The notes below the pieces were generated by a model. The model was not told where the DNA came from, did no database searches, and saw only the letters and a program-made list of their open reading frames with translations. This document shows, piece after piece, positions 7,489 through 62,981 of a stretch of 64,000 nucleotides of DNA. The stretch lies in sequence record MF498773.1; one strand, written 5' to 3'. Numbering within the stretch: position 1 is the stretch's first letter; every line of letters starts with the position of its first letter. A program made the position numbers and the translations under genes.

Positions 7489-9051
7489 ATGTGTGGTCAG
7501 TACCCTGTAGATGATTTCATTGGACAAACTTTTCCTACTCCGAAAGGTGGGGTGTTGACTGTTGTTGGTGACAATGGGTTGAAGGGTAGTAAAAAGATGT
7601 ACAAACTATCATGCTCAATATGCTCCCGCGATTTAGAATTGTTCCCCCATCTGTTTGAAAGTAGAAAAGGAAACCTAAACAAGAAACAAATACCGTGTGG
7701 ATGTTCTTCTAGAAAAAGATACACAGAAAAACAAAATATTATTTTGATCAACAGAATATTACCGACTGTTGGTTTGTATGGTCATAAATGTGAAGGTTCG
7801 ACTGGTGTTATTGTCGGTGGTAACGAAATATTTTCAATATATTGTCCAATACATTCCCATGATAAAGAATTATACCCCAATCCTTTTACAACAACAAAAG
7901 GCCATTTAATGTCTGGACGGATTCCATGTGGGTGTTCCAATAGGGCAAAAACTAAGACAGAAGAACAGGATATAGTATTAATAAATCGGATTTTAAAAAA
8001 GAATACAGCATTAAAAACTCACAAATGTTTAGGTTATGCAGATAACAAACTACATTTTAAGATATACTGTTCGGTTTGTAATAGTGACGAAGATTTATAC
8101 CCAGAGCCGTTTACAACAACAAAGTATCAATTAGAAATGGGTTATATCCCTTGTGGATGTGCAAAAAATCATAAGTATGAAAAATTCCAAATTTGTATTC
8201 TTGTGGAACGTCACTTAACAGAAAACGAAAAATATAAAGGTCATAGATTTGGGGGTATTCTCGACGGATATAAAAACATACAATCTAAAGTAAAATTGTG
8301 GTGTCCTCATCACGGATACTATAATATTAGGTTTTCTGACTTAATTCATGGTGGTAAGGGGTGCTCTAGTTGTGGAGTGGAATCAACCAAAGATAAACTG
8401 AAAGAACAAGACCCAGTTGGCAAGATTCTATCTGTTTTAAAAACTGAAAAATTTGAAGGTCATGAATTTGAGGGTCTACCAAATGGATATAAAAACGCAC
8501 AATCTAAAGTAAAATTGTGGTGTCCTCATCACGGATATTATCAGATTTCTTATAATGACCTTGTTCATGGTGATCGTGGTTGTCCTTCTTGTGCGGAATA
8601 TGGATATAGACCAGTGAAACCCGGATACCTTTACGTAACCAACTGGACAAACTACGATAAAGATACAAACGAGTTTTTCAAAATAGGTATCACAAACTTC
8701 TTAGATCAACGTATCAAACAACAAGCTCGTAAAACGTCGTACAAGCCTCACCAGCTAATTGTATTCAAGTTCGAGGACGGTTCTATCCCACAAGAACTGG
8801 AACGTCTCACAAAGCCATACAGACAGGATATGGAGCATCCTATCATCACACCCGACGAGTTTGCTGATGGTACGACAGAAATCCTTCAAAACTGGATTGA
8901 TATTATTAAAATTCTCCCAGAACTGATTGACACGATCAGGGAGAAAGGATACACTCCTGAAATAGAAGTTGGTAAACGACTTTACAACAAGTTGATTAAG
9001 CTTGACAAAGACCAAATGGCTAAGGTAATCTTAGATCATCTTTATAAATGA
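7489..9051 (+). CDS. Free-standing homing endonuclease-like protein (Zn-binding repeats plus C-terminal GIY-YIG/T5orf172-like nuclease)
   Basis: Three CxxC...IPCGC repeats, two KVKLWCPHHGYY...GCxxC repeats, and C-terminal YLYVT...FFKIGIT...RIKQ. Confidence 0.75.
   Translation: MCGQYPVDDFIGQTFPTPKGGVLTVVGDNGLKGSKKMYKLSCSICSRDLELFPHLFESRKGNLNKKQIPCGCSSRKRYTEKQNIILINRILPTVGLYGHKCEGSTGVIVGGNEIFSIYCPIHSHDKELYPNPFTTTKGHLMSGRIPCGCSNRAKTKTEEQDIVLINRILKKNTALKTHKCLGYADNKLHFKIYCSVCNSDEDLYPEPFTTTKYQLEMGYIPCGCAKNHKYEKFQICILVERHLTENEKYKGHRFGGILDGYKNIQSKVKLWCPHHGYYNIRFSDLIHGGKGCSSCGVESTKDKLKEQDPVGKILSVLKTEKFEGHEFEGLPNGYKNAQSKVKLWCPHHGYYQISYNDLVHGDRGCPSCAEYGYRPVKPGYLYVTNWTNYDKDTNEFFKIGITNFLDQRIKQQARKTSYKPHQLIVFKFEDGSIPQELERLTKPYRQDMEHPIITPDEFADGTTEILQNWIDIIKILPELIDTIREKGYTPEIEVGKRLYNKLIKLDKDQMAKVILDHLYK
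8266..8541 (+). repeat. Internal duplication (~57 bp) in the endonuclease gene
   Basis: ggatataaaaac..acaatctaaagtaaaattgtggtgtcctcatcacggata at 8266-8322 and 8485-8541. Confidence 0.9.
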
Positions 9052-9061
9052 GAATCAGAAA

Positions 9062-9619
9062 ATGAAATATGAACTTGGTAAGAAATATAAAATCGTGTAC
9101 ATTCATGCAGATGCATCAGATGAATTCGGCGTATCTACCGGTGATGTGATTGAATGTCATTACATCGACGATCAAAATGGTTATTTGTGGACTCGCGACG
9201 TTTATTGTTATGGTAAACAGGTAAATCCTTATTATGAACATGGTGCATGGTGTTTCGCTGCTCCATCAGATCCAGAAATTATTTTGGAAGAATATGAACC
9301 AGAACCAAGCTTGTCAACCATCTTCACTACCTCGGTTGAACTTGGTCGGGTTGATACTTCAAAAAAGCGATCTTATGATTACGTTCTCTCCAAATGTATG
9401 GAAGAACTCGGGGAACTGTCTTTGGAGGTGCAGATCGAAAACGGTTTGTCTTACAAGGAACCGGGTAAGGATGGTATTCGCGGTGAAGCTGTAGATCTGG
9501 CTATTGCTGCTATGGATATGTTCGCTCTTGCCTGTGGTGATATGAACAAGCAAGCTATCGAAAATCTTTTCCTTTCTACTATGGAAAAGAAAATTGTAAA
9601 ATGGAAAGAGAAGGCTTAA
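9062..9619 (+). CDS. MazG-like nucleotide pyrophosphohydrolase with an extra N-terminal domain
   Basis: KCMEELGELSLEV...GEAVDLAIAAMD matches the MazG EExxE...ExxD metal-binding pattern. Confidence 0.75.
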   Translation: MKYELGKKYKIVYIHADASDEFGVSTGDVIECHYIDDQNGYLWTRDVYCYGKQVNPYYEHGAWCFAAPSDPEIILEEYEPEPSLSTIFTTSVELGRVDTSKKRSYDYVLSKCMEELGELSLEVQIENGLSYKEPGKDGIRGEAVDLAIAAMDMFALACGDMNKQAIENLFLSTMEKKIVKWKEKA

Positions 9620-9620: not shown

Positions 9621-10644
9621 ATGGCAAAGAAAGAGATCGTTGAAACTCGTTGTGGTATTGACTTTTACCTGAGTAAGTTTAACGAAAAGTGTTCCACCAG
9701 AAAAGAAATTATGACATGTGAACGAGATTGGATAGGTTGTTACTTTCCAAAGAAATACAAATATGTTGTTATGGATTCCGATGGATTGTTCTACGCATAT
9801 TCCAAAAAGCCGGTTCTTAAACAATACTCGTGTGGTCTTGGGTGGGGAGTAGACTCAGTACAAGGCACAGGTCATGATAATGTTGAGGTATGGTTTAATG
9901 ATAGCGATTTCGGTTGGAAACCATGGTACAGTGGATATTGTAAAATCGAAGGTTAAAAATGACACCAGTCAAGTATTGCGAAGAACACCGAGCTAGGTAT
10001 TACGAATATGGGTGTCCTCAATGTAACATACGCAACGAAAGAGAAAACCGGGTCATAAGAGAGATGTCCATCAAGAAAACAAAGAATGGACTAACATGGC
10101 CGTTGAGTAAATCGGAAAAGAAGGTTTAAAATGAATCAATATTTTGAAGTGGTAAGTAATGACCCGCTGTTTGTTCTGTTGAAAGAGTCTGACGAAGCAA
10201 ATAAAGCTTTTAAAGATAAAAGCTCAAATGAAAATTGGGAATTGTTAAATTTGGCATATAATGCAGTGGAAGAAATTCTCTATAATCGTTATCCAGATTG
10301 TTTTGGTTGGCGGGCTGTTTTATCTCCTTTTGACGAAGACCGTTTCTTGGTAAAAATTAAAGGGTAATTTCTAAAAAGGGCTTGTAATCGTTCAAGCCCT
10401 TTGATAAAATTGTATCAAAGTGAAATAAGGAAAAATTATGTTTATTTCCTCTATTGATGAAAATGAAAAGCTAGTAGTTCAATCCAAGTATGATTCGGGT
10501 GTCCATCTAGGTTTCACCGCAGGCGTCCAGAAAGATGGTGAATATACTCTGACTACTCTAGACAAAGAGCTTACCGCCCAACAGATCTCGTATCTTGAGA
10601 TGATGTTGATGATGGAAATCAAAAAGATGCTAGACCCACGCTAA
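9621..10644 (+). other. Small hypothetical ORFs (9621-9956, 10131-10367, 10438-10644 and a short Cys-containing ORF near 9959)
   Basis: RBS-led + strand ORFs. Confidence 0.7.
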
Positions 10645-10918
10645 GGAAAAATTATGAAAGTCCAGTTTAAATCAGAAGAAGCTATGACTGAGTTTAAAAC
10701 GTTAGATCGCAACAACGAAGAACTAGCAAATGCATATGGTATGAGTCCCATCCCTATTGGATTTGTAGATGAAGAATGGTGGGATATCTTTAATGAGGAA
10801 GATCTGCATTTTTACACCATTAACATTTCCGACGAATCCCATTTTTTCGAAATTTTGGAAAAATAATTCAAAAACGCTTGCTCTCGGGTAAGCGTTTTGT
10901 TATTCTATTCTTGTTGAA
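10642..10918 (+). repeat. Direct repeat A: RBS + RF-family gene + terminator/promoter hairpin
   Basis: Homologous to 11482-11758 (offset 840 bp); 10828-10908 is identical to 11668-11748. Confidence 0.95.
10654..10866 (+). CDS. RF-family paralog (MKVQFKSE...)
   Basis: Shared family pattern MK(I/V)xFKSE...N..(A)..(Y/M)GMxP...E..(F/Y)FE. Confidence 0.85.
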   Translation: MKVQFKSEEAMTEFKTLDRNNEELANAYGMSPIPIGFVDEEWWDIFNEEDLHFYTINISDESHFFEILEK

Positions 10919-10941
10919 GCAAAACAGATGAGGAAAATAAC

Positions 10942-11265
10942 ATGGCAGAATTTATCACAGAAACATCTAACAAGACTCACCACAAAGTGGTTCAACTTCG
11001 CAAGGCCATTCGCAAGGTTGATACCGCAAAGATTGCTATCTTTCGGAAAACAGATTTGACTGATGCATATCGTGAGTACAACTACGCAATGTATCGTGCA
11101 GTTGAGGAAACCGGGGATCACAAAATTTATATCGACTTCAAATACAACCAACCAAAAGAGAAAATAATTGATCTGGTCGAAAAAATTTGTTCCATAGAAG
11201 ACACCAAGGTAGAATGGAATGGTTCTATGGGTAGTGCGATTGTTGTTACTTTCAAAGTAGAATAA
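10942..11265 (+). CDS. Hypothetical protein (107 aa)
   Basis: GAGG RBS; lies downstream of the cassette promoter. Confidence 0.8.
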   Translation: MAEFITETSNKTHHKVVQLRKAIRKVDTAKIAIFRKTDLTDAYREYNYAMYRAVEETGDHKIYIDFKYNQPKEKIIDLVEKICSIEDTKVEWNGSMGSAIVVTFKVE

Positions 11266-11274
11266 GGAAAAATT

Positions 11275-11484
11275 ATGAAAGTCCGTTTTGTGTCAGAAAA
11301 AGCCATGAACGAATATGGTGAAAAAGACCGTCATAACAAGCTTGTGGTAGAACGTTTTGGTATGAGCCCATTTGAGGTAGATACAGATCCAGATTGTGCT
11401 TGGTGGGACTATCTAGATGAGAATGGGGATATTGAATTCGTCTTCCCACAATTCGAACATCATTACTTTTTAACCAACATTTAA
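11275..11484 (+). CDS. RF-family paralog (MKVRFVSE...)
   Basis: Same TAAGGAAAAATTATGAAAGTCC start as its neighbours; family pattern present. Confidence 0.85.
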   Translation: MKVRFVSEKAMNEYGEKDRHNKLVVERFGMSPFEVDTDPDCAWWDYLDENGDIEFVFPQFEHHYFLTNI

Positions 11485-11758
11485 GGAAAAATTATGAAAG
11501 TCCGTTTTAAATCAGAAGAAGCTATGAATGTGTATGCGACGATAGATCGCAACAACAAAGAACTCGTGGATGCGTATGGAATGAACCCCATCCCTGTTGG
11601 ATTTGTAGATGAAGAATGGTGGGATATTTTTAATGGGAAAGGGGTACTTTGCTACACCATCAACATCTCCGACGAATCCCATTTTTTCGAAATTTTGGAA
11701 AAATAATTCAAAAACGCTTGCTCTCGGGTAAGCGTTTTGTTATTCTATCCTTGTTGAA
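11482..11758 (+). repeat. Direct repeat B
   Basis: See repeat A at 10642-10918. Confidence 0.95.
11494..11706 (+). CDS. RF-family paralog (MKVRFKSE...)
   Basis: Highly similar to 10654-10866 (GFVDEEWWDIFN, YTINISDESHFFEILEK). Confidence 0.9.
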   Translation: MKVRFKSEEAMNVYATIDRNNKELVDAYGMNPIPVGFVDEEWWDIFNGKGVLCYTINISDESHFFEILEK

Positions 11759-11823
11759 ACGAGAGATGAAAGAAGGACAAACTGGTACTTTCCTTCTTTC
11801 CAAAACAAACCGAGGATAAATTT

Positions 11824-12039
11824 ATGGATATCGAAACCACTTACTATGCTTTCGTTGACAAAGGTTATGCAAACCCACAGTCAAATCTGTTTGACCCAGT
11901 TAGTAAGATCCCGAACGTTGTGTACACACCACATACTAAACTTGACGGAACCTATTGCAAGTTTGAGGATGGTTCTGGTATACTCTATGTATACCGTGGT
12001 GGGGCGGATTACGATTTTATCCCCAAAGTATCTATCTAA
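11824..12039 (+). CDS. Hypothetical protein, paralog of 21042-21284
   Basis: MDIxTxYYAFVDKGYANP...EDxSGILxVY...DFIP is shared. Confidence 0.85.
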   Translation: MDIETTYYAFVDKGYANPQSNLFDPVSKIPNVVYTPHTKLDGTYCKFEDGSGILYVYRGGADYDFIPKVSI

Positions 12040-12182
12040 GGAATGACATGACCAACTTTGAATTTGCTATGAAACGCGCTAAGTTCCAAATCACCAAGCA
12101 CAAAGAGACTTTGATCTGTGCTGGTATTGTTGGTGTTGTTCTTTTCGTTATCATCCCGATGTTGAACGGTTAAGGAGATATT

Positions 12183-12569
12183 ATGCTGAACCAACGTTAT
12201 ACTGTAAAAAAAGATTTTGAAGATTTCCACAAAGAATTTCCCGAACTTGTGTTGGGTTCTTCTTTCACGGTAACAGGGACAGACGGAACCGGTATCATAT
12301 CTATCACCATGGATAGTGGAACCGAATATCATATCGAACAATATCCTTGGTGCTGGTGCTTCTACACAGAAGATATGACACAAGAATATCTGACCCCAGT
12401 TGAAAACCTCTCAGACGAAGAAAAGAATGAGCTGATGGTTGCCAATTTGAAGAAGAAAGAAAAGGAGATGGAAGAAAAGAAAGCTTTGTTGTTGGCAAAT
12501 TGGGAGAAGAAAGAGAAGGAGTTGATCGAAGCTCTGGAAAACCATCGCAAAAATAAGCCGGGGGTTTGA
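12183..12569 (+). CDS. Hypothetical protein, paralog of 20196-20435, with a charged coiled-coil tail
   Basis: MLN...EFP.L..G..FTV...GI..I.MD.GT.Y.I...WCFYT is shared. Confidence 0.8.
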   Translation: MLNQRYTVKKDFEDFHKEFPELVLGSSFTVTGTDGTGIISITMDSGTEYHIEQYPWCWCFYTEDMTQEYLTPVENLSDEEKNELMVANLKKKEKEMEEKKALLLANWEKKEKELIEALENHRKNKPGV

Positions 12570-13839
12570 TATGATTTCTTTGGTAGCATTATCTTGTTAT
12601 GCTCCGATATACTTCATTGTTCAGCTAGGGGAAAAGATAAATCGTGATGTGATTCTATCTTGTATTCTCATGATCTTTACTATCGTTCTGGTATTCTGTA
12701 CCACCACGATTACCCTAAAATATGGAACAAACCCTGTGGTATTGTTTTGGATTTGTCAAACGAACATTCTTACTTGTCTGATGGCTAAAATAATTTCAAA
12801 AAGTCTTTGACTCTATAGCTAGTTCTGGTAATATACCTATGTACCCACTGATGAGGAAATTGAAATGAAAATTCTTTTTACCGACCACCAAGCCGAACTA
12901 ATCAACCGCATCAAGGCTTATCACGACAGTCGTATCGCTCTGACAATTTCCCCTGAGTCTCGCGCATTTCGCGATATGATGGAAGGACAAGAGTTGTGCA
13001 ATTCTCAATGTATTGCGCTCCGCAACTTCTTCGGTCGGGTTATCGATTATGATGCTTGTGGTAATGATATCGCTGCTGATGAAATGACCAAATACATGCA
13101 TGGGGTTATGCGTGACCACGTTCGCAACTGGCTGTTTGAGGAATAAGATATGAAAAAGATTATGGAAGCTCTGGGATATGTTTGGTTCGAAACCCGTGGT
13201 GATTTCGTTGCTACTATCGGACAGTGGAAAGAGAGTTACACCTATTACGAAGAAACCGATTTCCCTTGTTGGTTGAAACTGGTGGATTCTATTGAGAGTC
13301 CATACAACGCAAAAACGATTATGATTTACGACAGGGTTTCTGAATCTCTGGTGGGGGAAATAAAGTTTGAAAAATTGTGATTTGATTAAGATTCTCCAAG
13401 AACGAGATCCCAATGCAAAAGTAGAATTCGTTTTCTTCGGTAACCATTTTGACGTAGACGGATTGGTGCATTTCGACCCAACTGGTTATAACGCTATCGA
13501 GTTGTATGGTCAGCCACTCCATGAGATGGAAATTGTTGTTACTTTCAACCAAGGATAAAATATGTTCTATGCACTGAAAAACAAATATACTGGTAAAGTT
13601 GCTATGGTAGAGGTGTGTGGTGAAGCTGTTTATTTGGTAGATGATGAAGCAATTGGAGATCATGCAGTTGCTTTTGTCTACACCGAAACCACCTCACAGA
13701 AAATTCAAGATACGTTGGATGGTGTCAACGACAATCTGTTTGTCCAAATCGATCCAGAACAATACGATATCGTGGAATTTATTTTGAAATAAATGATAAA
13801 AAGGGCTTGCTTCGGTAGGCCCTTTTCGACTATTATATT

Positions 13840-13878
13840 CATATCGAAACGAGAGACGGAAAGGAAGAAATCATGAAA
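13840..13878 (+). repeat. 39-bp leader/RBS cassette, copy 1
   Basis: catatcgaaacgagagacggaaaggaagaaatcatgaaa is identical to 14944-14982. Confidence 0.95.
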
Positions 13879-14704
13879 GCATTCACCAAAGGTCAGGTTG
13901 TAATTCAGGTTGCAAGCGTAGACGGTAAAGGCACCTTCTCTTGGTCCCGTGCTGTTGTGAAATCCTGTGGTAAGAAGCAAATGACCCTATGTCATCCAGA
14001 GACTGGTGCAATGCTCGGTAACCACTTCCGTCCTGAGCACGGTGTTGATATCGCCAATGGTCGGAACTATGGTGTTGTTGCTGATATGACTGACGAACAG
14101 GCCGACAAATACACCCTGACAATTGCTCAACTCTACGTCACTCGTGAGCTGTTTGATCTGGAAGACCAGCTTGATGCTGCTAAAGCTCGCAAGGCACCGG
14201 TTGCTTTTGTTGAGTTGATGGAAAAGAATGTTGAAGAGTTCAAGAAAAACGTTGCTAAAGTTCAAAGGGGTTAATCATGAAAATCAAAGACGGTAACGAC
14301 ATCATCACTTTCACTGGGGAATATGGGGTTTATGAATCTGGTGAACCCTGTATGTCAAGTTTGTCTGATATGATAGTTCGTGTTAATTGTGGTTCCGCTG
14401 AAATTATTGGTTGACTCAGTGATCTGTTCTGGTAAGATATCTATAGAAACTAACCGAGGTAATTAACATGAATTTCTTCAATTATATTGTTGTGATGAAA
14501 ACGGTTAACGGTATGGAAAGATTTTTGGTCTCTGCTATGGATCCTTCTAAGGCTAAGAAAAAGGTTATGGATTACTTGGTTGACGAATGCATTCCGTTTA
14601 GTTGTTCCTATCCGAGGAATGAAACTATACGAGTTGCAGATTCCCAAGTGGAAGAAATGAAAAATCGCTCTGATATCAAAACCCTTTATGTTTAAGGATC
14701 TATT

Positions 14705-14923
14705 ATGAAAATCAAATTCAAATCAGAAGCACACATGAACGAGTTCGCAAATATCAACCTTGGTTGGTCTTCCCACAATAAAGATCTGGTTCTTCGTTAT
14801 GGTATGAACCCTTTCGAGGTTGAGGTTGATATTACCGAATCTTGGTGGGATACAGTTGATGGTGATTTCGCTATTCATAAAGCCGGTGAAGGAAAATATT
14901 TTGAAATAGTTGTTGCATCGTAG
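14705..14923 (+). CDS. RF-family paralog (MKIKFKSE...)
   Basis: Family pattern: N...YGMNPFEVEVD...WWD...EGKYFEI. Confidence 0.85.
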   Translation: MKIKFKSEAHMNEFANINLGWSSHNKDLVLRYGMNPFEVEVDITESWWDTVDGDFAIHKAGEGKYFEIVVAS

Positions 14924-14943
14924 TCTAGTTCTGGTATTATATC

Positions 14944-14982
14944 CATATCGAAACGAGAGACGGAAAGGAAGAAATCATGAAA
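14944..14982 (+). repeat. 39-bp leader/RBS cassette, copy 2
   Basis: Identical to 13840-13878 but precedes an apparently unrelated ORF. Confidence 0.95.
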
Positions 14983-17478
14983 CTCAGCAAAGCCCAAAAC
15001 GAAGTAGTTGCTATTTGTGTTGCGGAAGTTGAGCGTCTTTGGAACCAGTATCAAGTTGATTTGGTTCGTTGGGAAAACACTCCCAAGGGTAAGGCCAAAG
15101 AAGATATGACTTTCCGTCTGGGTGCTGTTAACCGTGCTACTGTTCGCGCTCTCATTAAGGCTGGTGTTCTGATTGTCGACCACAAGTTCAGTGTAAAAGA
15201 ACCAACTTTGAAGAAATATAACTATGGTCGCGACCGTGTTTATGGTGACAACTATTACGAAGAAAACATTTACCGTCTGAACAAAGAATTTATCAAATAA
15301 CGCTTTACGCTTGTTTTTGTTTTTGGTAATATGTCTGTACACCAACTGAGAAGGAAATGACTATGAACACCAAACTCCGCAATCGCCTGAATAACATGCT
15401 TGGTAATCAAACTCTGGTTTGTACTTCCACAATCGGAACCATTACCATGAAGGCCGCGCTTGATAATGGTGGTATGGACTTTGTTGTTGATGTGAGCATC
15501 ACCACCGAAAATGGTGTAGAGAATAAAGGCCGTATGTACACCAAACAGGCGCTGGAAACTTACGGTGATTCCATCTCTCATATCGTTGTTAAGAATTATT
15601 AAGGGGATATTATGAAAAGTTTTATTGTTTCCTTCAAAATCCAAAATGCATTTGGTGATAAAGTCCTTACTGAATACGTTTGGGCATACACCCCGAAATG
15701 TGCAGTCGAGAAGATCCAAGAAAAATATGTTGGCGTTTATCACGCTAAAGCAAAACTTGCTATCTAAGGGGATAGTATGAAAAATAAAATTCTTGTAGAA
15801 CTAGTTGCAAAACAAACCAGTGATCTGATAAAATCTAATGGTCATCGAATGGCACTAGTTGCTTTGGGTAAATGGATTGAAGCCACCCCATATATCACCG
15901 ACGAGGAACTTAATTTCCTCATGAATTTGGTTAAAGTATATCAGGAGCAATAATCATGGCTAAAGGTAAAGTAACTGCAAAATCTCTCCGCGCTGGTCAG
16001 ACTGTATATCGTGTATGTGGCCCTACTGGTTTCATCACCAAGCTTCTGATCACCTCTCGTCCGTTTGTGTACAAGAAAAAAGATTCTGTGCTGAATGGTA
16101 CTCTGTGGGTGAACTATCGTAAGTGGTTCAAAACCAATAGTTACAAATTCGGTGTGGTTCGAGAAGTGAGTAACTTCTTTAATGATGATTTCAGCCTTAC
16201 CGATGCTGGTATTGGTGGTAGTCATCCGGGTGGTACTAATCGCACCTTCTACACTTACAAGGCTGCCAAACGCTGGTCTGAGCACGTTAAATCGCTTCCT
16301 AAGAAACAGGAGTGCTGGGACGACGATCTGTGGAGCCCAACCGATTATGATGACTTTCTAAGGGGGATAGTATGAAGGCTTTGATTGATACAAAGAATGT
16401 CCAACTTAAGTTATATTGGATGTCACAGGATACGATTGATACTTATCCGAGCGAGAAGGCTCAAGTCATCGAATTTATTATGTCTCTGGATAGTGATCTA
16501 GTTCCCATGGTCGAACTTAGTATCGACGAATATAATTTTCTTTTGCAAGTTATGTAAAAACTACTTGTGACTGTAATTGATTTGTGGGATACTTTCCTTG
16601 TTGGGGAGTTTCCCACTTTCATTGGAGAATTGATTATGTATATTCGCTTCGATATTCAAGACCTGTTGGAACTTCTGGAAATGATTGGTGTAGATCACGT
16701 TACCAAGACCAATTATGATGAAGATATCGGTTTTACCCAAATTGATTACATCTTCGATATTGACGGCCACCGGGTTATCCTGACTGAACCAAGTTTCAAT
16801 GATTACGTTACCACCTGTGAGGTGAGTGATGTTGCTACCATGAAACATCTGGCAGAAGAAAACAATATCCCGTTTGAAATGAAAGACCACTACCTGTAAG
16901 GAGTTTATTATGATGGATTTTATTAATAGTCAATTTGGCTTCGTTCTCATCACCACCATGTTCCTGTGTGGTATCGTATTCAACGGTGTTGTAACCTATT
17001 ACGAATCTCGTCAAAACAGTAAGATGGAAAAATTCCTTTCTTACCTGATGCACTTGGTAGGGTGTGCATTGTCCATCAACGGGTATGTGGAACTTCTGAA
17101 AATTATGGATTTCAGTAAGATTATGGGTTGAAAATAAAATGATAAATGGCTTGCTTCCGTGAGCCATTTGTTTTACTATGTGTATATCGAAACGGGAGGT
17201 TCTTATGGTAAACGAAATGATGAATGCAATCGCTGTCAAGCTGGAAGAAGCAAAATCCAAAAAGCGTCAGGGTCTGGTTTATCGCAATGCATATGCGGTA
17301 CTGGAAAACGGCCCGGATAGCGTAGACTATGTTGTTTCGGTTCACGTAGAGTCTACTATCGAATATGATGGAAAAGCGCGTGATGAAGCCCAACGCCGAG
17401 CTGATGCAATGCAAACAGAGCTGGGTTATCTTGGTTACGGTTATACTGTTGTTCGTGTTGAAGTCTAAGGAGAATATT

Positions 17479-17775
17479 ATGGAAATCACCATCGCCCTGC
17501 GTGAAGCTTTCGAATCCGTTAAATGTTTGTCCAAGAAATTTGATGTTTCTGACTGGGATTATGTTGATAACATGAATACCCTCTCCAACATCTACATCGC
17601 TGTTCCTATGGGTGAGGATGAGGTTCGGGGTTATATCGATTCAGCCCTTCGTAATATCGATGATGCAAAAACTGTTTTTGACCGTGGTGATTCTTATGAG
17701 GATGATCTGATTGGTATTCACCTTGATATGGCTCTGGTAAATCTCCGGGCTGCAATTTTTTACGCTTCTAAGTAA
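17479..17775 (+). CDS. Hypothetical protein, distant paralog of 40035-40352
   Basis: Shared LRE...E.R.Y...A...I..D....NLRAA; start placed at the AAGGAG-led ATG 17479. Confidence 0.7.
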   Translation: MEITIALREAFESVKCLSKKFDVSDWDYVDNMNTLSNIYIAVPMGEDEVRGYIDSALRNIDDAKTVFDRGDSYEDDLIGIHLDMALVNLRAAIFYASK

Positions 17776-17784
17776 GGAATCAAT

Positions 17785-18264
17785 ATGAAACTGAAATTCA
17801 AATCCCCTATTATCCGCTCCAAATTCATGTCTCGTTTTGGATTGACTGAATGGGGTAAGAAAGTTATCGATGCCATTGAGAATGGTGCTAATTGGCAGAA
17901 GGAAACTAAGTATGATGGTTATTACACACGGGATTACTCGTTTGGTAAGGACTATCTGACCATCATAGAAAGTGCATCTTATTTTGAAGTTGTTCTGGAA
18001 GAAAACGCTTGGTTGATTGCTAATGAATATGGAGCTGTTACAACCACAGATGAGAAGGTTGCAGAACACTATTCTATCACCAATAAAACCCCTATGGTGG
18101 AAGTTCCATTTATTCGCGTTGATGGTGAGTTGTATGTGTCTATCAATGAGGTTAAGATGGATGAATCTGTACAAGCTCAAATCGATAAGCGAATCAAGAA
18201 ACAGGAAGTTGCCAATAAAGCTGGTTTGTCAGTACAAGAAATGGAAAATCTTTTTCGGAATTGA
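17785..18264 (+). CDS. RF-family-related protein with a C-terminal extension
   Basis: MKLKFKS...F...IIESASYFEVV. Confidence 0.65.
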   Translation: MKLKFKSPIIRSKFMSRFGLTEWGKKVIDAIENGANWQKETKYDGYYTRDYSFGKDYLTIIESASYFEVVLEENAWLIANEYGAVTTTDEKVAEHYSITNKTPMVEVPFIRVDGELYVSINEVKMDESVQAQIDKRIKKQEVANKAGLSVQEMENLFRN

Positions 18265-19738
18265 TTGACATCACCCACAAACAAAGAATATCATTTCCAT
18301 ATCGAATCGAGAGAGGTGTTATCATGAACTACGTCGTTTCCCTTGCCAAGAAAGTTATCAACGTTGCTGAGAACAATATCACTGATGAAGTGTATGATGC
18401 AGCTCAAACCGTTTGTGGTGTCGATTATGACTGGGCTTGCGAAATGATTTATCTCGGTGATGTGGAAGAGTGCATCGAGGTTATCCGGGCTTATATGGAG
18501 TTCCTGAATTGCTTCCCTGCTCAATACTGGATTAGCGATCTGAAAGATGAGATGGAAGAAATCAAAAATCTTTTGAAAAATTGATTGACTCCATAATCTG
18601 GTAATGTAATAATGTCCTTGTTGAAACGAACTCAAAAGGAAAAGATTATGAAACTCCAACGTGACGCAATTAACCTTGGTTCTGAATATCGTGGTAACTG
18701 GGCATTTTCCATTCACGATAAAGATGGGGATCGTATTGCTCGCGTTGAGGCTGTTATCGATGCTATGGAAATAGGGATTCGCGGTGACGGTCGTGTTCTC
18801 ACTTGGCGAGACCATTCCGATATGTGCCCACTCTATGACGAGGGTATTGGTTGTGGTTACATGATCCCCGTTGATATGGTAGACGAGTTCAAAGCAGCTT
18901 GGGCAATTGCAAAGAAAACAAAATAAATAGTTGACTCCGAAAGCGTGTTTTGAGATACTAATCCCGTAGACAGAAACCCTCTCTTGAAAAAGGAAATCAT
19001 CATGACTGCACAAATCTTCTTCGCCACTCGTTCCGCTGCTCGTGTTGCTGGTTTTGGTAAAATGACTGACAACGGTACTCAGGCCACCAATCGTTGGGCT
19101 CGTACTGTCGATGTGAACTCTACCGGGAACAAAACCCTGTCTGTCGGTCGTGGTGTTCGCAAGAACGGTTGCAAGGCCGTTACCATCATCACCAAGAAAG
19201 CAAAAACTCTGGTTCACTAAGGAGCTTATTATGTTCTCATTCTTCCGTAAAATCGACCCCAAAGCCGCTGCCATGGTACAGTATATGGATACCCATCCGA
19301 CTGGTGATATCTTTGGTGATACGCCACGGACTGTTTTCTTTGAAGGTTTTCATCTTGGTTTTAGTTGTGATGCCGAAGGAAAACCCCGCAGTATTTTCCT
19401 TAACAAATCCAATACCAATGGCGGGACTACATGTATTGAGATTTTCGATATCAATAACAACAAGAAAGAAATCAAAGCACTGGATAATGCGCGACACCGA
19501 GCCCTTAAACGTTATAATAACCATACACAAGAAAAGGCAAAAGCTAAACGACGGGAAGCTCTGGATAGTCTGGAAGTATGATGAATATCCTCATTTCCTT
19601 GGTTCTGGTATTGCTCGGCCTCTTTCTTATCCATGTTGCTGAATGGGCTGGTAAAAAAGATGCAAATGGTGGGATTGGTGGGTTGTTTACTCTGGTAATC
19701 TGTTTTATAATGTTTGTGTTGATTGTTAAGGAGCTAGT

Positions 19739-19981
19739 ATGAAAATTCGTTTCAAAGATACCGACGCCCAATATGAATTCTTGTGTATGTCTGATGCAAA
19801 TGCAGCTATTGCAGAATATATGGGAATGGATACCCATGACGCCATTTCGTATGAAGAGTGTGGTAAGACCATCATTGCTCTGGTAGACGTTAACGGCGAC
19901 CCAATCACTGTTGGTGAATTCGACCAGTGGGAAGCACAGGTACATCAAGGTGAACAACAGTTCTTTATCATTGAGGAATAA
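19739..19981 (+). CDS. RF-family paralog (MKIRFKD...)
   Basis: ANAAIAEYMGMDTH...EQQFFIIEE. Confidence 0.85.
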   Translation: MKIRFKDTDAQYEFLCMSDANAAIAEYMGMDTHDAISYEECGKTIIALVDVNGDPITVGEFDQWEAQVHQGEQQFFIIEE

Positions 19982-20195
19982 TTTAGTGTCAAAGACCAAT
20001 CACATTCCGAGCATAAAAAGCGTCTGGGACCAAGGCCGTCATCCAGCAAACTCACGAATCATTGGCCTTGAATCATTAGCACGAAGTGGTTCAACTAGTG
20101 AGGTAAGGCGCAAGGCTATTGTGGCACTAAAGAGAGATTTCGGAATTGAATTCAAGGGGTGAATACTGTTCGCCAACTATTAGAGGAATAAAGAT

Positions 20196-20435
20196 ATGCT
20201 GAACAAGAAATTCAAAATCATCGAAGAAGTAAGCCCTATCATGAAATCAGAGTTTCCGTTGATGGTAGTTGGTAACTATTTCACAGTAAAAGAAACCCTC
20301 AAGACGGGCTACACCGAAGGGATTACGGTGATTGAGATGGATGATGGTACTATCTACAATATCCAAGATAGCTCAATGTCTTGGTGCTTCTACACCATTG
20401 GTATGATCCCGTGGCGTCTGGTGGAGATTAAGTAA
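20196..20435 (+). CDS. Hypothetical protein, paralog of 12183-12569
   Basis: Shared N-terminal domain ending in WCFYT. Confidence 0.8.
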   Translation: MLNKKFKIIEEVSPIMKSEFPLMVVGNYFTVKETLKTGYTEGITVIEMDDGTIYNIQDSSMSWCFYTIGMIPWRLVEIK

Positions 20436-20684
20436 ATGAAGATTCGTTTTAAAGATGAAAAAGCCCGTCAGGAATTCTCTAATTGTCGTGCTAACGTTGC
20501 GATTGCATACTATATGGGAATGGATACCCACGAAGCATACAACCATTGTAGCGGGGATATTGGGCTGATAGACGATAATAATTGCGGTATCATTATTCCA
20601 GATCCATACATATCTGGATTTGATGGATGGAATGCGGTTATCCATAAGGGTGAGCGTCGTTACTTTGTTATTGAAGGGGAATAA
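20436..20684 (+). CDS. RF-family paralog
   Basis: MKIRFKDE...ANVAIAYYMGMDTH...GERRYFVIE. Confidence 0.85.
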   Translation: MKIRFKDEKARQEFSNCRANVAIAYYMGMDTHEAYNHCSGDIGLIDDNNCGIIIPDPYISGFDGWNAVIHKGERRYFVIEGE

Positions 20685-20687
20685 GAT

Positions 20688-20984
20688 ATGAAGATCCGTT
20701 TTAAATCAGAACAGCATCTACGCGATTTTAAAGCTGCATCGGTAGAAAATTTGGAAATCGCGGATTTTATGAGAATGCACCCAGTTGAAGTAGTTAAGAT
20801 CCATGGTCATTACTACATCGAAACAGACATTCTTGATTGTACTCTTATCCTCGAATCCGAACACGATTTCTTTGATTGGATTGAAGATGATCCCAAAACC
20901 CTTTTCGATATCATGTTAGAAAAGAAGGCTGAATACGACAAGGCTTTCAACGACTACATCCAATCGGTTAAAGAAAACAGTTGA
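20688..20984 (+). CDS. RF-family paralog with coiled-coil tail
   Basis: MKIRFKSE...NLEIADFM; tail EKKAEYDKAF. Confidence 0.85.
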   Translation: MKIRFKSEQHLRDFKAASVENLEIADFMRMHPVEVVKIHGHYYIETDILDCTLILESEHDFFDWIEDDPKTLFDIMLEKKAEYDKAFNDYIQSVKENS

Positions 20985-21041
20985 CCATCTATTAGGTTAT
21001 CTGTATATTGGTACTTGTCCCACTATCAAAAGGAAATTTAA

Positions 21042-21284
21042 ATGGATATTCGTACTATCTATTACGCATTCGTTGATAAAGGTTATGCCAATCCAACTCA
21101 TAACCTATTTGTTCCTGTTGAGAATCTTTCCTCTACCAATCACAAAGTAAAAATGTCAGTTGCTAATACCAACTCAAATCTGGCCTTTACTTACGAGGAC
21201 GATTCAGGTATTCTAAACGTATACATTGATGGGGAAGTAGATTTCATTCCCAACGGTAAAGCCCAAGATAATAAAGGAGAATAA
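21042..21284 (+). CDS. Hypothetical protein, paralog of 11824-12039
   Basis: YYAFVDKGYANP motif. Confidence 0.85.
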   Translation: MDIRTIYYAFVDKGYANPTHNLFVPVENLSSTNHKVKMSVANTNSNLAFTYEDDSGILNVYIDGEVDFIPNGKAQDNKGE

Positions 21285-21287
21285 ATC

Positions 21288-21659
21288 ATGACAGATATTA
21301 TGCGTATCCGTTTCCTCAGCGAAAAGGACAAAGAACATTTTGTATCCCGTAGTGTAAACGCAAACACCCACATCGCAAACCATATGGGTATGGATTGGAA
21401 TCGAGTTTCATTTGATGGTCGTCGCTGGTATCTGGTAGATGAGAACAACAATGAAGTGGTGGTTGATGACGGTGATGTTGACTCATTCATTCACCCATCT
21501 GAATACCAATTTTTCGAATGGGATATTCTCCCGGTAGAAAAGAAAAAACCTATCAAAGAACTCTGGGATATTGCACAACAGAAGAAAGCAGAGTATGATG
21601 ATGCTATGACTGAATACAACAAAGCAGTAATGGAGAAGCTTGATGAAAGTGCGATTTAA
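21288..21659 (+). CDS. RF-family paralog with coiled-coil tail
   Basis: RIRFLSE...ANTHIANHMGM; tail QKKAEYDDAM. Confidence 0.85.
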   Translation: MTDIMRIRFLSEKDKEHFVSRSVNANTHIANHMGMDWNRVSFDGRRWYLVDENNNEVVVDDGDVDSFIHPSEYQFFEWDILPVEKKKPIKELWDIAQQKKAEYDDAMTEYNKAVMEKLDESAI

Positions 21660-21900
21660 AAATATCGAATCCAAGTTCGCGTTTACCACTGGTGGACGAG
21701 CTAATATGTCTATCGCCGAATACATGGGTAATGAGTTCCATGAAGCTCAAACATGCTTTGATGGAAGCATCGAACTCGTGGATAGTAAAGGGAATAATAT
21801 TACTCTCAATACGTATGGTAAAGCTGTTCCAGATAATGGATGGAATGCTTGCTTCTTTGAAGATGAAACTCAATATTTGGAGATGCATTATGAAGATTAA
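21643..21900 (+). CDS. RF-family paralog
   Basis: MKVRFKN...ANMSIAEYMG...ETQYLE. Confidence 0.85.
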   Translation: MKVRFKNIESKFAFTTGGRANMSIAEYMGNEFHEAQTCFDGSIELVDSKGNNITLNTYGKAVPDNGWNACFFEDETQYLEMHYED

Positions 21901-22234
21901 GTTTAAAGACGAACAATCTCGACTCAATTTCCGACAGTGTGACAATCTTAATAAAGATATCGAATTTAAGATTGGTAATAAACCACATGAAGTAATCCAG
22001 AATGAACATGGTTGGTATCTCTCCAATGATGGATTAAAACTAATCATCAATGGGTTTTATGCTTTCATCAGTTCACGCGAAATGAAGTATTTTGATATTG
22101 TTGAAGATGATATCAATCCCATGGATACCATTGAAGCTCTATGGGAACTATGGGACGATGTACAAGAAAAGAAAGCTGCTTTTGAACGTAGCTTGGAACT
22201 TTACCACGCTGAATATAATCGAATGTTCCGCTGA
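21890..22234 (+). CDS. RF-family paralog with coiled-coil tail
   Basis: Internal ATG of track ORF 21692-22234 with a GGAG RBS: MKIKFKDE...EMKYFDI...EKKAAFERSL. Confidence 0.8.
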   Translation: MKIKFKDEQSRLNFRQCDNLNKDIEFKIGNKPHEVIQNEHGWYLSNDGLKLIINGFYAFISSREMKYFDIVEDDINPMDTIEALWELWDDVQEKKAAFERSLELYHAEYNRMFR

Positions 22235-22259
22235 ATCATCAAACGATCATGAGAGGGGT

Positions 22260-22288
22260 AAAATGCACTTTTTTGGTGCATTTTCTTT
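22260..22288 (+). terminator. Intrinsic terminator ending the paralog cluster
   Basis: aaaatgcac / gtgcatttt stem followed by a T-rich tract. Confidence 0.6.
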
Positions 22289-22339
22289 TATACACCATTT
22301 TAAAACATTTTCTCTCTATCCCTTGCTGTATAAGGGATT

Positions 22340-47267: not shown

Positions 47268-49910
47268 ATGAAATTTGGACTTGATGAAGCTAACCTTGTT
47301 GTGAATCACCTGTTGCTTGACCAATCCGATGAAATTTTGGAAAAGATCCGGGACACTCGAAAGGGTGATATCAAGGATGAACCTTTCAAACTGACTGTCT
47401 TGATCAACGGCATCGAGATCGAACATGTTGAATCTTACGAAAACTTCATGAAATACCAGTATGAAGTTATGGAAAATCGGGTTAAAAAACAATACAACGT
47501 TGAGGCGTTTGATCAACGGGTACGAGAAGCAGCGGAACAACTTATCAAATCCAAGTTTGGTGATTTGATGAACAAAATGTATGATTTTGAAAATTCAGTT
47601 GATTTTTGCAACGACGTAATTCAAAAAGAATGGGGTATGTAATGAAAAAACTTTATGTAGAAAAACGAGTCACGAAAGACGTTGAAGGGGTTGTGATTGA
47701 AGAGGGTAGCGGATTCAACTATAAATCAAAGCGTTTGGTCGTCTCCGTTATTAACAAAAATAATGGTGTTGTATCGCAACTTATTGCGTGTATTACAGGA
47801 TTAACTATTATTTTAGACCAGTTTAATCTTAGTGGTGGTGTCCGTGTTACTGAGTATCATTCCGGTGGCACTGTTACTTATGTAACTGATGTATCTGAGT
47901 TTGGAATGACTCTGAACGGCAATCTGTTTACAATCAAAAAAGAGAAAGTATCAGAATTTCGGGAACTGGAAGTTGGTGATATGCTCACTATTGGTCTTCG
48001 TCGAAACAAAAATCCAAAAGATATTTCTGTTTCGTTTATTGGTCAAGATGGTTCCGCGTTCGCAACTGATTACAAGGGTAAATCATACTTCATCAACCGA
48101 AACGACCGAGACCAACTAAAGTCACTGAAATTGAAACTAATGTAAAAAGTGTTTGACATGACAAATCATAATCTGGTATTCTCTATCTCGTAAACAACAA
48201 CGAGGAAATGACTATGAAAGAAGGTAGCAACGTACAGATCAACACTAATGTGATGAATGACGATGACCAGCGTCACTTGATTGGTGTCGTTGGTGTCGTA
48301 TCATACTACAATCCGGAGGTTTGGGTTGAGGTTACTTGGCCCAATGGTACTGTCAGTGCATACGAAGAGAATGAACTGATCTGTCTCGACAAAGAAGAGA
48401 AGAAACCATTACCAGAAGTAGTACAACCGGAATCTGGATATGATGTTTCTTTTGTTGAAAAAGTAATCGAGAAAATCAATGATTATCATCGGGACTACCT
48501 TGAGCGTCATCCCAACGATTGGGACTGTTGTGGATTTTCCTCTGTGTATGTTGAATTTGGAAGAAAGAAAAAAGTAAAAGACCTTGTTTTGGGTCTTGGG
48601 TTTGACATTGCGTATAAATCAGGTAAAGAATCATTCTTGGAACCAAAATTTAGAATCCCGTATTGTGGTCATCAGTCGTTGACCTACAAAGAGGAAATCA
48701 TGCAGATTATTTGTGACGAAATTAATAATGTGGTTGGTGAAAAAGTTGCATACCGCAGCTCTTACATGGACTAATAAAAGGAAAAATAATGAAAGCATTT
48801 GTTTATAAATTCAAAAATCTGAAAGACCGGAAAGAATTTATCGGTCTCGCCAAAATTAATGATTGGATTGTTTCTAATTATCTGGTTGATTATCGTCTGA
48901 CAGTTAACCAAGATAGCTTGCACAGACTTAACAGTGATGGTTATATTAGCCGTTTTATTGTTAATGGTGTATTGAAGGTGGACGAATTCAACACTATTGA
49001 TAGTGACGAATTTTATAAATATTTCGTACTCGATAAAGAGATTGAAATTGAAGATCTTCCGAAACCTCGTCAGATTAGTGATGAAGAACTAATGGGAGCG
49101 GTGACTAAGGAAATCCTCGCCAATAATAGTATTCAAATTCCGTCTAAATTGAGTGAGGTCAAACCAGCATCTTTTGGGGATGTAACTAAACCCTTGAAGA
49201 AAAAAGACGAAGGTCTTAACATAACAGGTAACCTAAAAATTGGAAATTGTCAGTTAGCACCACTAGATCAAGCAATTTTCAATCTAGTTAACACACAAGG
49301 TAAACTTTCTCAAGATATGGAAATCAAAATTTCCATTAAAAATGGTAAGGTGACATTCAGTGTATCCAAATGATCAATATCCACGTATGAACTTTGATAC
49401 CATTTACCGTTTTCGGTCTACCGAAGCGGCTCAAGAATATCGTACTAGTTGCGAACGTAATTTTTATAATTATGAAATTCTTAAGAATGGATTCATCGTG
49501 TTTCATATCGACGACGATGAAAATGTAATTGCGGTTTGTGATATTGAAGATAAGGAAAAGAAAAATCCAATCTATATCAATGACGGAACCGTTTTTATTA
49601 ACCAAAAAGAGAGTTTTCTTTTTATTCCGTGTCGGTGTTAAATATGACAGTTAAAGAATTGAAGGATAAAGCCCGGTCTTTCGGGCTTGCTGCTGAAATT
49701 ATTTTGAACAATGCAAAATATCGCGGATTCAACGATTGGATGTATGATTTCGTAACCCTTGACGAATCTCGTGGGATTACAGAAACAAACGTAGTTAAAT
49801 TTTATTTTGTTAGCGGTGTTCATACCATTTCCCACCCAGTCAATATGGTTGTCTTGGGTCATTCACCAGAAAAAGTTATTGGTGAATTTCATAAGGAGGT
49901 TATCGAATGA
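47268..49910 (+). other. Six hypothetical ORFs; 48789 and 49360 have RF-family-like N-termini
   Basis: YKFKN..DRKEF and YRFRSTEAAQEY. Confidence 0.65.
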
Positions 49911-62299: not shown

Positions 62300-62375
62300 T
62301 GGTGCCGAATGTCCGACTCGAACGGACCACCCCAGCGTTACAAAGGCTGTGCTCTACCAGATGAGCTAATTCGGC
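62300..62375 (-). tRNA. tRNA-Thr(TGT)
   Basis: Cloverleaf GCCGAAT...TT TGT AA...GTTCGAG...ACCA; C-C mismatch at the base of the anticodon stem. Confidence 0.9.
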
Positions 62376-62654
62376 TGACGGAATATAATCAGGATCGTTA
62401 GACTGTGATTATATCCTAATGTGGTTGACATGCTATCATATCGAGGAAGGACGTTCAACCGATTTTGTCCATCTGTTCGTTGTTTGGTAAAGGACAGTTA
62501 CCTCAAGTTCAACCCTGCTTGTCAAGGGGTAGTTACCATATCGTCTTTGTACTACCAATCCCGCCTGAAACCTAAAGGCACGTTTCAGGATATCCAGATT
62601 CTCTATGGCTGGCTTATTCCGGGGCATACGTCGTTACCCGTTCTTTGTGCTAAG
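62376..62654 (-). ncRNA. Candidate structured RNA (~280 nt) between tRNA-Pro and tRNA-Thr
   Basis: Stems cctgaaac/gtttcagg, ggtagt/actacc, tgtcc/ggaca, ggttga/tcaacc, atataatca/tgattatat. Confidence 0.55.
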
Positions 62655-62730
62655 TGGTCGGTGATACAGGACTCGAACCTGTGACCCTCTGGTCCCAAAC
62701 CAGACGCGCTACCAACTGCGCTAATCACCG
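62655..62730 (-). tRNA. tRNA-Pro(TGG)
   Basis: CGGTGAT...TCTGG-TTTGGGA-CCAGA...GGTTCGAG...ACCA. Confidence 0.95.
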
Positions 62731-62884
62731 AAAAGTTCCAAATCAACTGTATTTTACATACCAGATGACCACATCCCTATAATGGTTGATTTGGATTACC
62801 CCGTGCTTATCCGTAACGATTTAAAACCGCAAGGGGGCATCGTCTCCGAGGATTTTATCAGAACGTCTTCTAACTTCTTCTATT
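62731..62884 (-). ncRNA. Candidate structured RNA (~150 nt)
   Basis: ccaaatcaac/gttgatttgg 10-bp stem; acgat/atcgt stem. Confidence 0.4.
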
Positions 62885-62975
62885 TGGTGGATGTTGTTGG
62901 ATTCGAACCAACTTGTTTACCCAGAGGGAACGGATTTACAGTCCGCCGCTACACCGCCATCGTAGCCGAACATCC
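62885..62975 (-). tRNA. tRNA-Tyr(GTA)
   Basis: GCGGA-CTGTAAA-TCCGT, long variable arm, GGTTCGAATCC, ACCA. Confidence 0.95.
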
Positions 62976-62981
62976 AGAATT

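Follow-up and report, generated by a model that had tools for sequence, protein, structure and literature searches.

An expanded and modular family of small proteins in Aeromonas phage AS-szw, very probably related to the N-terminal domain of T4 GoF

The closest described counterpart of the genes considered here is goF of bacteriophage T4, whose product GoF (ComC-alpha) is an early protein of 141 amino acids (aa). GoF is a dimeric, non-essential protein that reaches about 20,000 copies in each cell, and deletion of goF from T4 is without effect under laboratory conditions (PMC12152347). The wild-type protein has no clear effect on RNA, while the gain-of-function mutant D25Y stabilises mRNA independently of Hfq (PMC12152347). 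A family with an 'LSm-like fold' comprising GoF together with MotB.1 and Frd.2 was described in 2025, the latter two T4 proteins being reported to have the predicted N-terminal fold of GoF (PMC12152347). Here we analyse bases 1-64000 of MF498773.1, the genome of Aeromonas phage AS-szw; this stretch of 64,000 nucleotides (nt) is called the window. AS-szw is a 230-kb T4-like phage of Aeromonas salmonicida (Straboviridae, Emmerichvirinae, Ceceduovirus), and at 10-22 kb its window carries small + strand genes in one run, their functions unassigned. The small paralogous proteins encoded there very probably represent the GoF N-terminal-domain family of T4-like phages, expanded specifically in this lineage. 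The family is already known; the new part is its expanded membership, and no new kind of system is involved.

The GenBank coding sequences of AS-szw coincide exactly with the coordinates of all genes named here, and every one is labelled 'hypothetical protein' (Table 1; genes are called by their first nucleotide in the window). The original prediction, made from the sequence letters, had listed eleven paralogs between 10 and 22 kb. Ten of these (10654, 11275, 11494, 14705, 19739, 20436, 20688, 21288, 21643 and 21890) are confirmed by PHROG profiles, BLAST and a family profile, whereas 17785 shares only its first ~18 residues with them. The core genes match PHROG 2980 ('goF mRNA metabolism modulator') and/or PHROG 3089 with E values of 1e-20 to 1e-30. 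To the PHROG 2980 group belong 10654, 11275, 14705, 20688, 21288 and 21890, with 11494 added as a near-duplicate of 10654 (seven genes, E 1e-20 to 2e-25); the PHROG 3089 group holds 19739, 20436 and 21643 (E ~1e-29), each of which also matches PHROG 2980 (2e-8, 3e-7 and 5e-3 among the three). By these sequence comparisons PHROG 2980 and PHROG 3089, the latter annotated 'unknown', are one single family. Pairwise BLAST inside a database of the 559 open reading frames (ORFs) of the window resolves three subfamilies, A (10654, 11275, 11494, 14705), B (19739, 20436, 21643) and the tailed C (20688, 21288, 21890), with links between subfamilies that reach E 1e-4 to 1e-8. With a profile built from 66 family sequences the ten core genes score 71-129 bits, as against 10 bits for the best of 2795 shuffled ORFs used as background.

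The link to GoF itself emerges from profile comparisons, made with the T4 sequence of the accession cited in PMC12152347. Residues 11-91 of T4 GoF match positions 3-71 of the 72 positions of PHROG 2980 (E 5.5e-6), and hhalign aligns the window family with GoF 12-90 over 71 columns at 18% identity (E 2.3e-5, probability 76%). T4 GoF also scores 21 bits with our family profile. The motifs from which the family was first recognised recur in the hhalign alignment with T4 GoF, namely F-K, N..A..GM.P and E..FF. In RefSeq the label 'goF mRNA metabolism modulator' is carried by seven orthologs in phage AS-sw and five in phage CC2, and it is more than a transfer of names because T4 GoF itself matches the family profiles. 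A family that the original prediction did not recognise is thus identified by profiles and PMC12152347 as that of the GoF N-terminal domain, under which name RefSeq already lists the sister-phage orthologs. Prior functional characterisation, which the original prediction had named as a point that would count against it, exists in part, through T4 GoF (PMC12152347). Deletion without effect was another such point, and in the laboratory the T4 goF deletion had none (PMC12152347). The family profile that it had proposed was built and searched: an exhaustive HMMER search found 46 clusters among 1.84 billion representatives, so that by sequence the family is small and restricted to phages. A word-indexed protein search with the family alignment reached Aeromonas phages only, and Pfam and NCBIfam searches gave no family match for the GoF-like genes. 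Among the 46 clusters, at least two, P0049 and P0057, are spurious repetitive matches to the tail described below, and the long match of P0061 runs mostly through tail-like repeats.

The window proteins resemble T4 GoF in several respects. The N-terminal domain is homologous, GoF 12-90 spanning the whole window domain; both are acidic, occur in T4-like phages and share an architecture of one domain followed by a variable C-terminus. One AS-szw member lies beside the gene for the large subunit of topoisomerase II, as does goF in T4. In contrast, most window members are bare domains of 69-85 aa that lack the GoF C-terminal domain, and where T4 has one GoF and two distant relatives, the AS-szw genome has at least 14 copies, of which at least 11 lie in the window. 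The best PHROG of T4 GoF is 622, not 2980. The member beside the topoisomerase gene, at 172219-172506 of the AS-szw genome, is a divergent GoF-like gene whose product has a net charge of -18, and it sits between the large-subunit gene and rIIA. This locus is near the place that goF of T4 holds with respect to gene 39, and the gene may thus correspond to T4 goF by position.

Table 1. Features of the AS-szw window discussed in the text (positions in the window; aa, amino acids)
Feature	Position	Strand	Evidence or remark
GoF-like, subfamily A, 70 aa, domain only	10654..10866	+	PHROG 2980 E 3e-24; 76% identity to 11494 product; ATI17251
GoF-like, subfamily A, 69 aa	11275..11484	+	PHROG 2980 E 2.5e-22; BLAST to 14705 E 2e-12
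GoF-like, subfamily A, 70 aa; recent tandem copy of 10654	11494..11706	+	repeat D1; dN 0.12, dS 0.40 vs 10654
GoF-like, subfamily A, 72 aa; singleton between clusters	14705..14923	+	PHROG 2980 E 2e-25
GoF-like, subfamily B, 80 aa	19739..19981	+	PHROG 3089 E 2e-29, PHROG 2980 E 3e-7
GoF-like, subfamily B, 82 aa	20436..20684	+	PHROG 3089 E 1e-29, PHROG 2980 E 2e-8; 0 nt after stop of PinA-like 20196
GoF-like, subfamily C, 98 aa, domain + helical tail (~20892-20981)	20688..20984	+	PHROG 2980 E 2e-20, residues 1-67
GoF-like, subfamily C, 123 aa, domain + helical tail (~21552-21656)	21288..21659	+	PHROG 2980 E 1e-22, residues 5-80
GoF-like, subfamily B, 85 aa	21643..21900	+	PHROG 3089 E 2e-29; overlaps both neighbours (-17, -11 nt)
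GoF-like, subfamily C, 114 aa, domain + long helix (residues 77-113, ~22118-22228)	21890..22234	+	PHROG 2980 E 5e-22
17785, 159 aa, membership unsupported	17785..18264	+	PHROG 26499 only; shares ribosome-binding/start region and first ~18 residues
Divergent member, 194 aa	48789..49373	+	GoF-like domain in residues 7-89 (~48807-49055), then unrelated extension of ~100 aa
Borderline candidate, 93 aa	49360..49641	+	family HMM 10.9-11.2 bits, E 0.011-0.014
Suggestive candidate, 161 aa	34071..34556	+	PHROG 8464 E 4e-5, residues 2-102
277-nt direct repeat D1, copy 1 (gene 10654 and downstream hairpin)	10642..10918	+	repeat search
277-nt direct repeat D1, copy 2 (gene 11494 and downstream hairpin)	11482..11758	+	DNA 88% identical to copy 1
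Intergenic hairpin after 10654	10871..10898	+	12-bp stem; dG -14.5 kcal/mol, z -5.6
Intergenic hairpin after 11494	11711..11738	+	identical to copy at 10871-10898
Hairpin upstream of 10438/10654 unit, PeSL-like layout	10375..10402	+	dG -15.7, z -6.3; promoter-like hexamers overlapping or following (10382-10410)
Terminator-like hairpin ending cluster 2	22254..22289	+	dG -13.8, z -5.0
'WCFYT' gene, PinA family by profile, 128 aa	12183..12569	+	near full-length match; PF10465 41.4 bits (cut-off 27), residues 2-118; PHROG 2167 E 1e-10
'WCFYT' gene, PinA N-terminal domain by profile, 79 aa	20196..20435	+	PF10465 39.8 bits (cut-off 27), residues 1-70
'YYAFVDKGYANP' gene copy 1, 71 aa	11824..12039	+	PHROG 14361 E 8e-40; missing from AS-sw cluster 1
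'YYAFVDKGYANP' gene copy 2, 80 aa	21042..21284	+	PHROG 14361 E 3e-38; orthologs in AS-sw, CC2, 65.2 and ZPAH1

The edges of the family are less sharply drawn than its core. Gene 17785, proposed as the eleventh member, has no BLAST or PHROG link to the family; hhalign aligns residues 1-18 only, with a probability of 15%, and we do not count it. The AlphaFold2 (AF2) model of its product is of low confidence, with a predicted local distance difference test score (pLDDT) of 62. The 5' end of 17785 may nonetheless be of family origin, a chimeric remnant of recombination joined to an unrelated body, because a 30-nt stop/ribosome-binding/start pattern (17773-17802) is common to this gene and four family members (5 matches, 0 expected). 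A 159-aa protein of phage 65.2 matched by Foldseek was rejected as an ortholog of 17785, being the fusion protein treated below. Of three weaker candidates in the original prediction, each aligned by single-sequence hhalign over just 13-27 N-terminal residues, 48789 holds up, with a full-domain alignment and 21.7 bits (E 6e-6) with the second-iteration family hidden Markov model (HMM), the best shuffled ORF reaching 10 bits. Candidate 49360 is borderline, with weak matches to PHROG 8944 'goF' (E 0.003) and to PHROG 622, that of T4 GoF itself (E 0.01). Candidate 34071 is suggestive through PHROG 8464 only, which we take as GoF-like because the AS-szw gene at 81.1 kb matches both PHROG 8464 and PHROG 2980; the family HMM and hhalign gave no direct match to 34071, and a database search returned just two close homologs. 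A scan of the AS-szw genome beyond the window added three significant divergent members (~81.1, 172.2 and 205.2 kb) and one borderline match, which brings the totals to those given above.

The expansion arose through tandem duplication and exchange of parts between genes. The tandem component, as originally proposed, is seen directly in repeat D1, two copies of a 277-nt unit that each contain a gene and its downstream hairpin. Segmental duplication as the source of two sister clusters (genes 10654 to 12183 and 19739 to 21890) found no support. The clusters have the same gene content, each holding one 'YYAFVDKGYANP' gene and one 'WCFYT' gene as first described (pairs 49% identical, E 4e-16, and 41% identical, E 2e-11, by BLAST), but they are not colinear, and a repeat search found no DNA repeat longer than 32 nt between them. 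Since gene order differs, no repeat is visible in the DNA and the accessory genes are only 41-49% identical, a recent duplication of the clusters is not supported and any such event is ancient. Within the syntenic region AS-sw carries 10-11 copies, CC2 8, 65.2 and ZPAH1 5 each and a metagenomic relative 4, and phages with 88-95% identity differ in both number and content. Cluster-1 members are absent from CC2, and AS-sw lacks 11494 and 11824, the missing segment being bounded by the identical hairpins of Table 1. Orthologs of the singleton 14705 occur in 17 phage records (64-94% identity) and in all four relatives compared at the syntenic region, AS-sw, CC2, ZPAH1 and avDM6, the last with 34% identity.

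Such rapid gain and loss would suit the view that the genes are non-functional filler, decaying duplicates carried in a recombination hot spot. A single break divides the AS-sw ortholog of 21890 into two ORFs, of which RefSeq annotates only the first piece, as goF, and T4 goF is dispensable in the laboratory (PMC12152347). This view is nevertheless extremely improbable. Comparison of family orthologs with AS-sw gives a ratio of nonsynonymous to synonymous substitution rates (dN/dS) of 0.19, and comparison with CC2 one of 0.18, the neighbouring genes giving 0.14 and 0.21. Like those of the neighbours, the family values indicate ordinary purifying selection on real genes. For individual members the ratio ranges from 0.03 to 0.49 in all those compared, and reading frames are intact across two genera. 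The genes have strong ribosome-binding sites, the predicted fold is of high confidence, and T4 GoF is an abundant protein (PMC12152347). Family dN and dS are each about twice those of the neighbours. The dN/dS comparison that the original prediction had suggested, made against AS-sw and CC2, gives no sign of gene-wide positive or diversifying selection.

Exchange of parts is most evident in the tails. The C-terminal tails of 20688, 21288 and 21890 are mutually homologous (40-47% identity; 47% for 20688 and 21288) and are each predicted to form one long helix (pLDDT 94-98). Among orthologs of 21288 the tail is 94% identical while the domain is 70-80% identical, and at the position of 21288 a metagenomic relative has a natural tail swap, a 21890-type domain (43-46%) carrying a 21288-type tail (91-97%). 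The interchangeable tails of the original prediction therefore stand for these three genes but not for 12183, whose K/E-rich tail has no BLAST similarity to them and contains two tandem 54-nt units of its own (12417-12524, 78% identical). Domain shuffling extends to other phages, where proteins with two or three GoF-like domains in tandem are found, and to phage 65.2, in which a single 159-aa ORF (L003:6797-7276, PHROG 32533) joins a PinA N-domain (1-87) to a GoF-like domain (91-159). In AS-szw, AS-sw and CC2 the unfused equivalents (20196 and 20436 in AS-szw) abut without a spacer. The domain is deployed alone in subfamilies A and B and with a homologous C-terminal helix of 30-40 residues in subfamily C, and in other phages it is fused to a PinA N-domain, repeated in tandem or extended by longer C-terminal parts as in T4 GoF. 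Two further architectures were noted: P0009, a metagenomic protein of 203 aa, has an extra N-terminal domain of 90 residues ahead of a 21288-type protein, and P0054, a 274-aa protein of Escherichia phage vB_EcoM_011D4, brings a tandem pair of GoF-like domains into a coliphage.

The fusion partner leads to the accessory genes of the clusters. The 'WCFYT' genes 12183 and 20196, all annotated as hypothetical in Ceceduovirus records, belong by profile matches to the family of PinA, the T4 inhibitor of the host Lon protease; they stand outside the GoF-like family. Both genes align to T4 PinA residues 5-85; the family of 20196, compared by hhalign with T4 PinA, gives 93.7% (E 1.8e-7), and T4 PinA reciprocally matches PHROG 10788, that of 12183 and 20196 (E 3e-6). 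The two differ from T4 PinA in that 20196 corresponds to the N-terminal half only and 12183 has a different, repeat-containing tail. The PinA N-domain of 20196 also resembles T4 Frd.2 weakly, with E 0.014 for Pfam FRD2 and an hhalign probability of 10% across 56 columns, which hints, without establishing it, that PinA-N and the GoF/Frd.2 group could be very distant relatives. The GoF-like, PinA and 'YYAFVDKGYANP' families are found together in a second genus as well, in phages 65.2 and ZPAH1. From this neighbourhood one might argue that GoF-like domains and PinA-family proteins jointly control Lon or a different AAA+ protease, perhaps by serving as adaptors or as decoy substrates: each cluster has its PinA-family gene, in AS-szw, AS-sw and CC2 a GoF-like gene starts at the PinA-N stop codon, phage 65.2 encodes the two as a single polypeptide, and the same three gene families keep company in two genera. 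We regard such protease-directed modules as improbable, however, as most family members do not adjoin a PinA-like gene, T4 goF and pin are ~40 kb apart, and the fusion may merely reflect frequent recombination of small neighbouring genes.

The AF2 model of the 21890 product (pLDDT 92.8) shows a strand, two helices, several short strands, a final helix-strand and the long tail helix, and the shared unit is modelled as an acidic alpha/beta domain of ~70 residues in which a strand and two helices are followed by a variable beta-hairpin region and a last conserved strand. In the alignment of 66 sequences the conserved parts are the first strand and positions 14, 21, 29, 64, 68 and 70 (in the numbering of 21890); the central hairpin segment, 17 to 51 residues long, takes up most insertions. 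This agrees with the original idea of a single scaffold whose surface varies. D25 and G84, the two suppressor sites of T4, map to the conserved frame, beside invariant N and E columns (alignment and PMC12152347). Foldseek comparison of the 21890 model with BFVD gave 302 matches at E <= 10, and the 15 at E <= 0.001 are all from phages. The matches come from T4-like phages of Aeromonas, Escherichia, Yersinia, Pectobacterium, Erwinia, Proteus and Klebsiella, and include the GoF-named protein of VR7 (probability 1.00, TM score 0.50, root-mean-square deviation 3.1 over 81 columns, E 0.011). Each of the ten core proteins is acidic, with isoelectric points (pI) of 4.1-5.3 and net charges of -4 to -13; T4 GoF has a pI of 4.6.

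These properties bear on whether the domains are true LSm/Hfq-like RNA chaperones, forming rings that bind RNA and protect or match phage transcripts. Hfq and the Sm-LSm proteins are structural neighbours of the GoF N-terminal domain according to PMC12152347, GoF(D25Y) lengthens mRNA half-life (PMC12152347), and Foldseek against PDB returned faint SH3 and DtxR-SH3-like matches (TM score 0.2-0.35, E 2.5-4.2; the query included the tail helix). Against this, the net charge given above is negative throughout, and the AF2 model inserts two helices after strand 1, an order of secondary structure unlike the Sm layout. Wild-type GoF and MotB.1 hardly affected an RNA reporter, and neither dimers nor hexamers were predicted with confidence by AlphaFold3 (PMC12152347). 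Neither Foldseek nor a profile search of PDB sequences with the family found a significant match for the window proteins. An RNA-chaperone role is accordingly very unlikely for these proteins.

The layout of the genes is that of tightly packed reading frames. All ten core genes start no more than 9 nt after the previous gene or overlap it, as do 18 of the 33 other genes in the region. The core genes are probably expressed as downstream cistrons of short early transcripts; early expression would fit, indirectly, with the runs of small + strand genes, the ribosome-binding sites and the promoter-like cassettes. The longer spacers contain five stable hairpins (z -4 to -6.3), some of which adjoin promoter-like hexamers; a stem-loop motif search returned 3 matches only. 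Promoter-early stem-loop (PeSL) cassettes have been proposed to drive gene shuffling in the hyperplastic regions of T4-like phages (PMC2839356, PMC4122927). The longer spacers resemble them in placing stable hairpins ahead of promoter-like hexamers, a ribosome-binding site and a start codon; one hairpin falls within the duplicated 277-nt unit, and two have the A-run/G3...C3/T-run form reported for phage nt-1 (PMC4122927). They differ in that only about five hairpins were found, and the family genes follow spacers of 0-9 nt rather than cassettes. We infer that recombination in the window would have used short stretches of common sequence: the conserved ribosome-binding/start region, and the cassettes of hairpin and promoter in the hyperplastic region. 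In the same region a promoter-proximal 48-nt leader (-10-like box, leader, ribosome-binding site, ATG) is found in copies at 13831-13878 and 14935-14982 that are 98% identical and precede the apparently unrelated genes 13873 and 14977, with a weaker copy at 11741-11788.

What the proteins do can be approached through their architecture. It is possible, and we propose it tentatively, that early in infection they serve as small and abundant modules that bind stoichiometrically, a role suggested by analysis of the abundance, dimerisation and dispensability of T4 GoF together with the acidity of the proteins, their fixed frame, in which both T4 suppressor sites fall, their variable hairpin, and the free combination of modules. 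Set in the conserved frame, a hypervariable hairpin would make contact with some macromolecule of host or phage involved in mRNA fate or protein turnover, the partner being more likely a protein than RNA directly, and the helical tail would add dimerisation or a second contact. The explanation as a whole, which combines a GoF-like expansion, a tandem and modular origin and early binding modules, is one towards which we lean, if only slightly.

Several observations weigh against this explanation. The relation to T4 GoF is remote and visible to profiles only (E ~1e-5, hhalign probability 76%); as a single-sequence phmmer query T4 GoF gave no significant match, though the top 4 of the 559 ORFs were family members. 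Neither MotB.1 nor Frd.2 is linked to the window family (hhalign probabilities 0.4% and 1.2%; MotB.1 HMM 0.6 bits), and Foldseek against PDB, with a query that included the long tail helix, gave a best E of 2.0 and did not reproduce the LSm/SH3 class. Acidity is widespread among the neighbours, 40% of which have a pI below 5, and promoter-like sites in the region are not above chance (45 against 38.7 +/- 5.7), a point that also separates the region from PeSL arrays.

The original prediction had instead suggested an anti-defence or host-takeover arsenal. Host takeover is what T4 early genes in general are expected to serve. On the anti-defence reading each paralog would counter a different host immunity system and an arms race would drive the expansion. 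Small, acidic and probably early, the proteins are encoded in a hyperplastic region; their copy number and content differ between phages as close as those compared above; a variable hairpin is set on a fixed frame; and they cluster with PinA-family genes, which counter a host protease. Yet the gene-wide dN/dS of ~0.19 is no higher than in neighbouring genes, no link to defence was found in the literature, and nine core members (11494 was left out) and 17785 gave no PADLOC match at E <= 0.01, a weak test because PADLOC models defence and not counter-defence proteins. T4 GoF, the one relative that has been studied, shows a phenotype in RNA stability and none known in defence (PMC12152347). We therefore consider an arsenal of this kind unlikely.

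Other features of the window lie outside these clusters. Its recognisable genes include those for an HNH-type endonuclease, for a MazG-like protein and a DNA methyltransferase, and for a topoisomerase II subunit and a tail fibre. The endonuclease gene (520 aa, 7489-9051) and a gene whose C-terminal half is a MazG-like pyrophosphatase (9062-9619) are found immediately upstream of the run of small genes. At ~56 kb both GC skew and gene orientation reverse, and nine tRNA genes (Thr, Pro, Tyr, Asn, Met x2, Gly, Leu and Arg) are clustered on the - strand at 62300-63918.

GoF is an abundant early protein of T4 whose wild-type role has stayed unassigned for decades after goF mutants were obtained. 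The Aeromonas phages offer a natural comparison set for it, with a minimal GoF domain, many diverged copies, swaps, fusions and differences in presence or absence between near-identical genomes, and this set reveals which positions of the GoF domain belong to the fixed frame and which to the variable surface. Assignment of the 'WCFYT' genes to the PinA family betters the annotation of ~20 Aeromonas phage genomes considered for use in aquaculture. A broader idea, which we think doubtful, is that the GoF-like domain is a binding scaffold with an indel-rich hypervariable hairpin, combined with a helical tail, a PinA N-domain or tandem copies, and that the at least 14 copies in Ceceduovirus form a repertoire of inhibitors, each directed against a different host factor such as RNases, proteases or immunity proteins. 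If true, such a repertoire would assign to wild-type GoF the function that it has been without since goF mutants were isolated on rho-mutant hosts.

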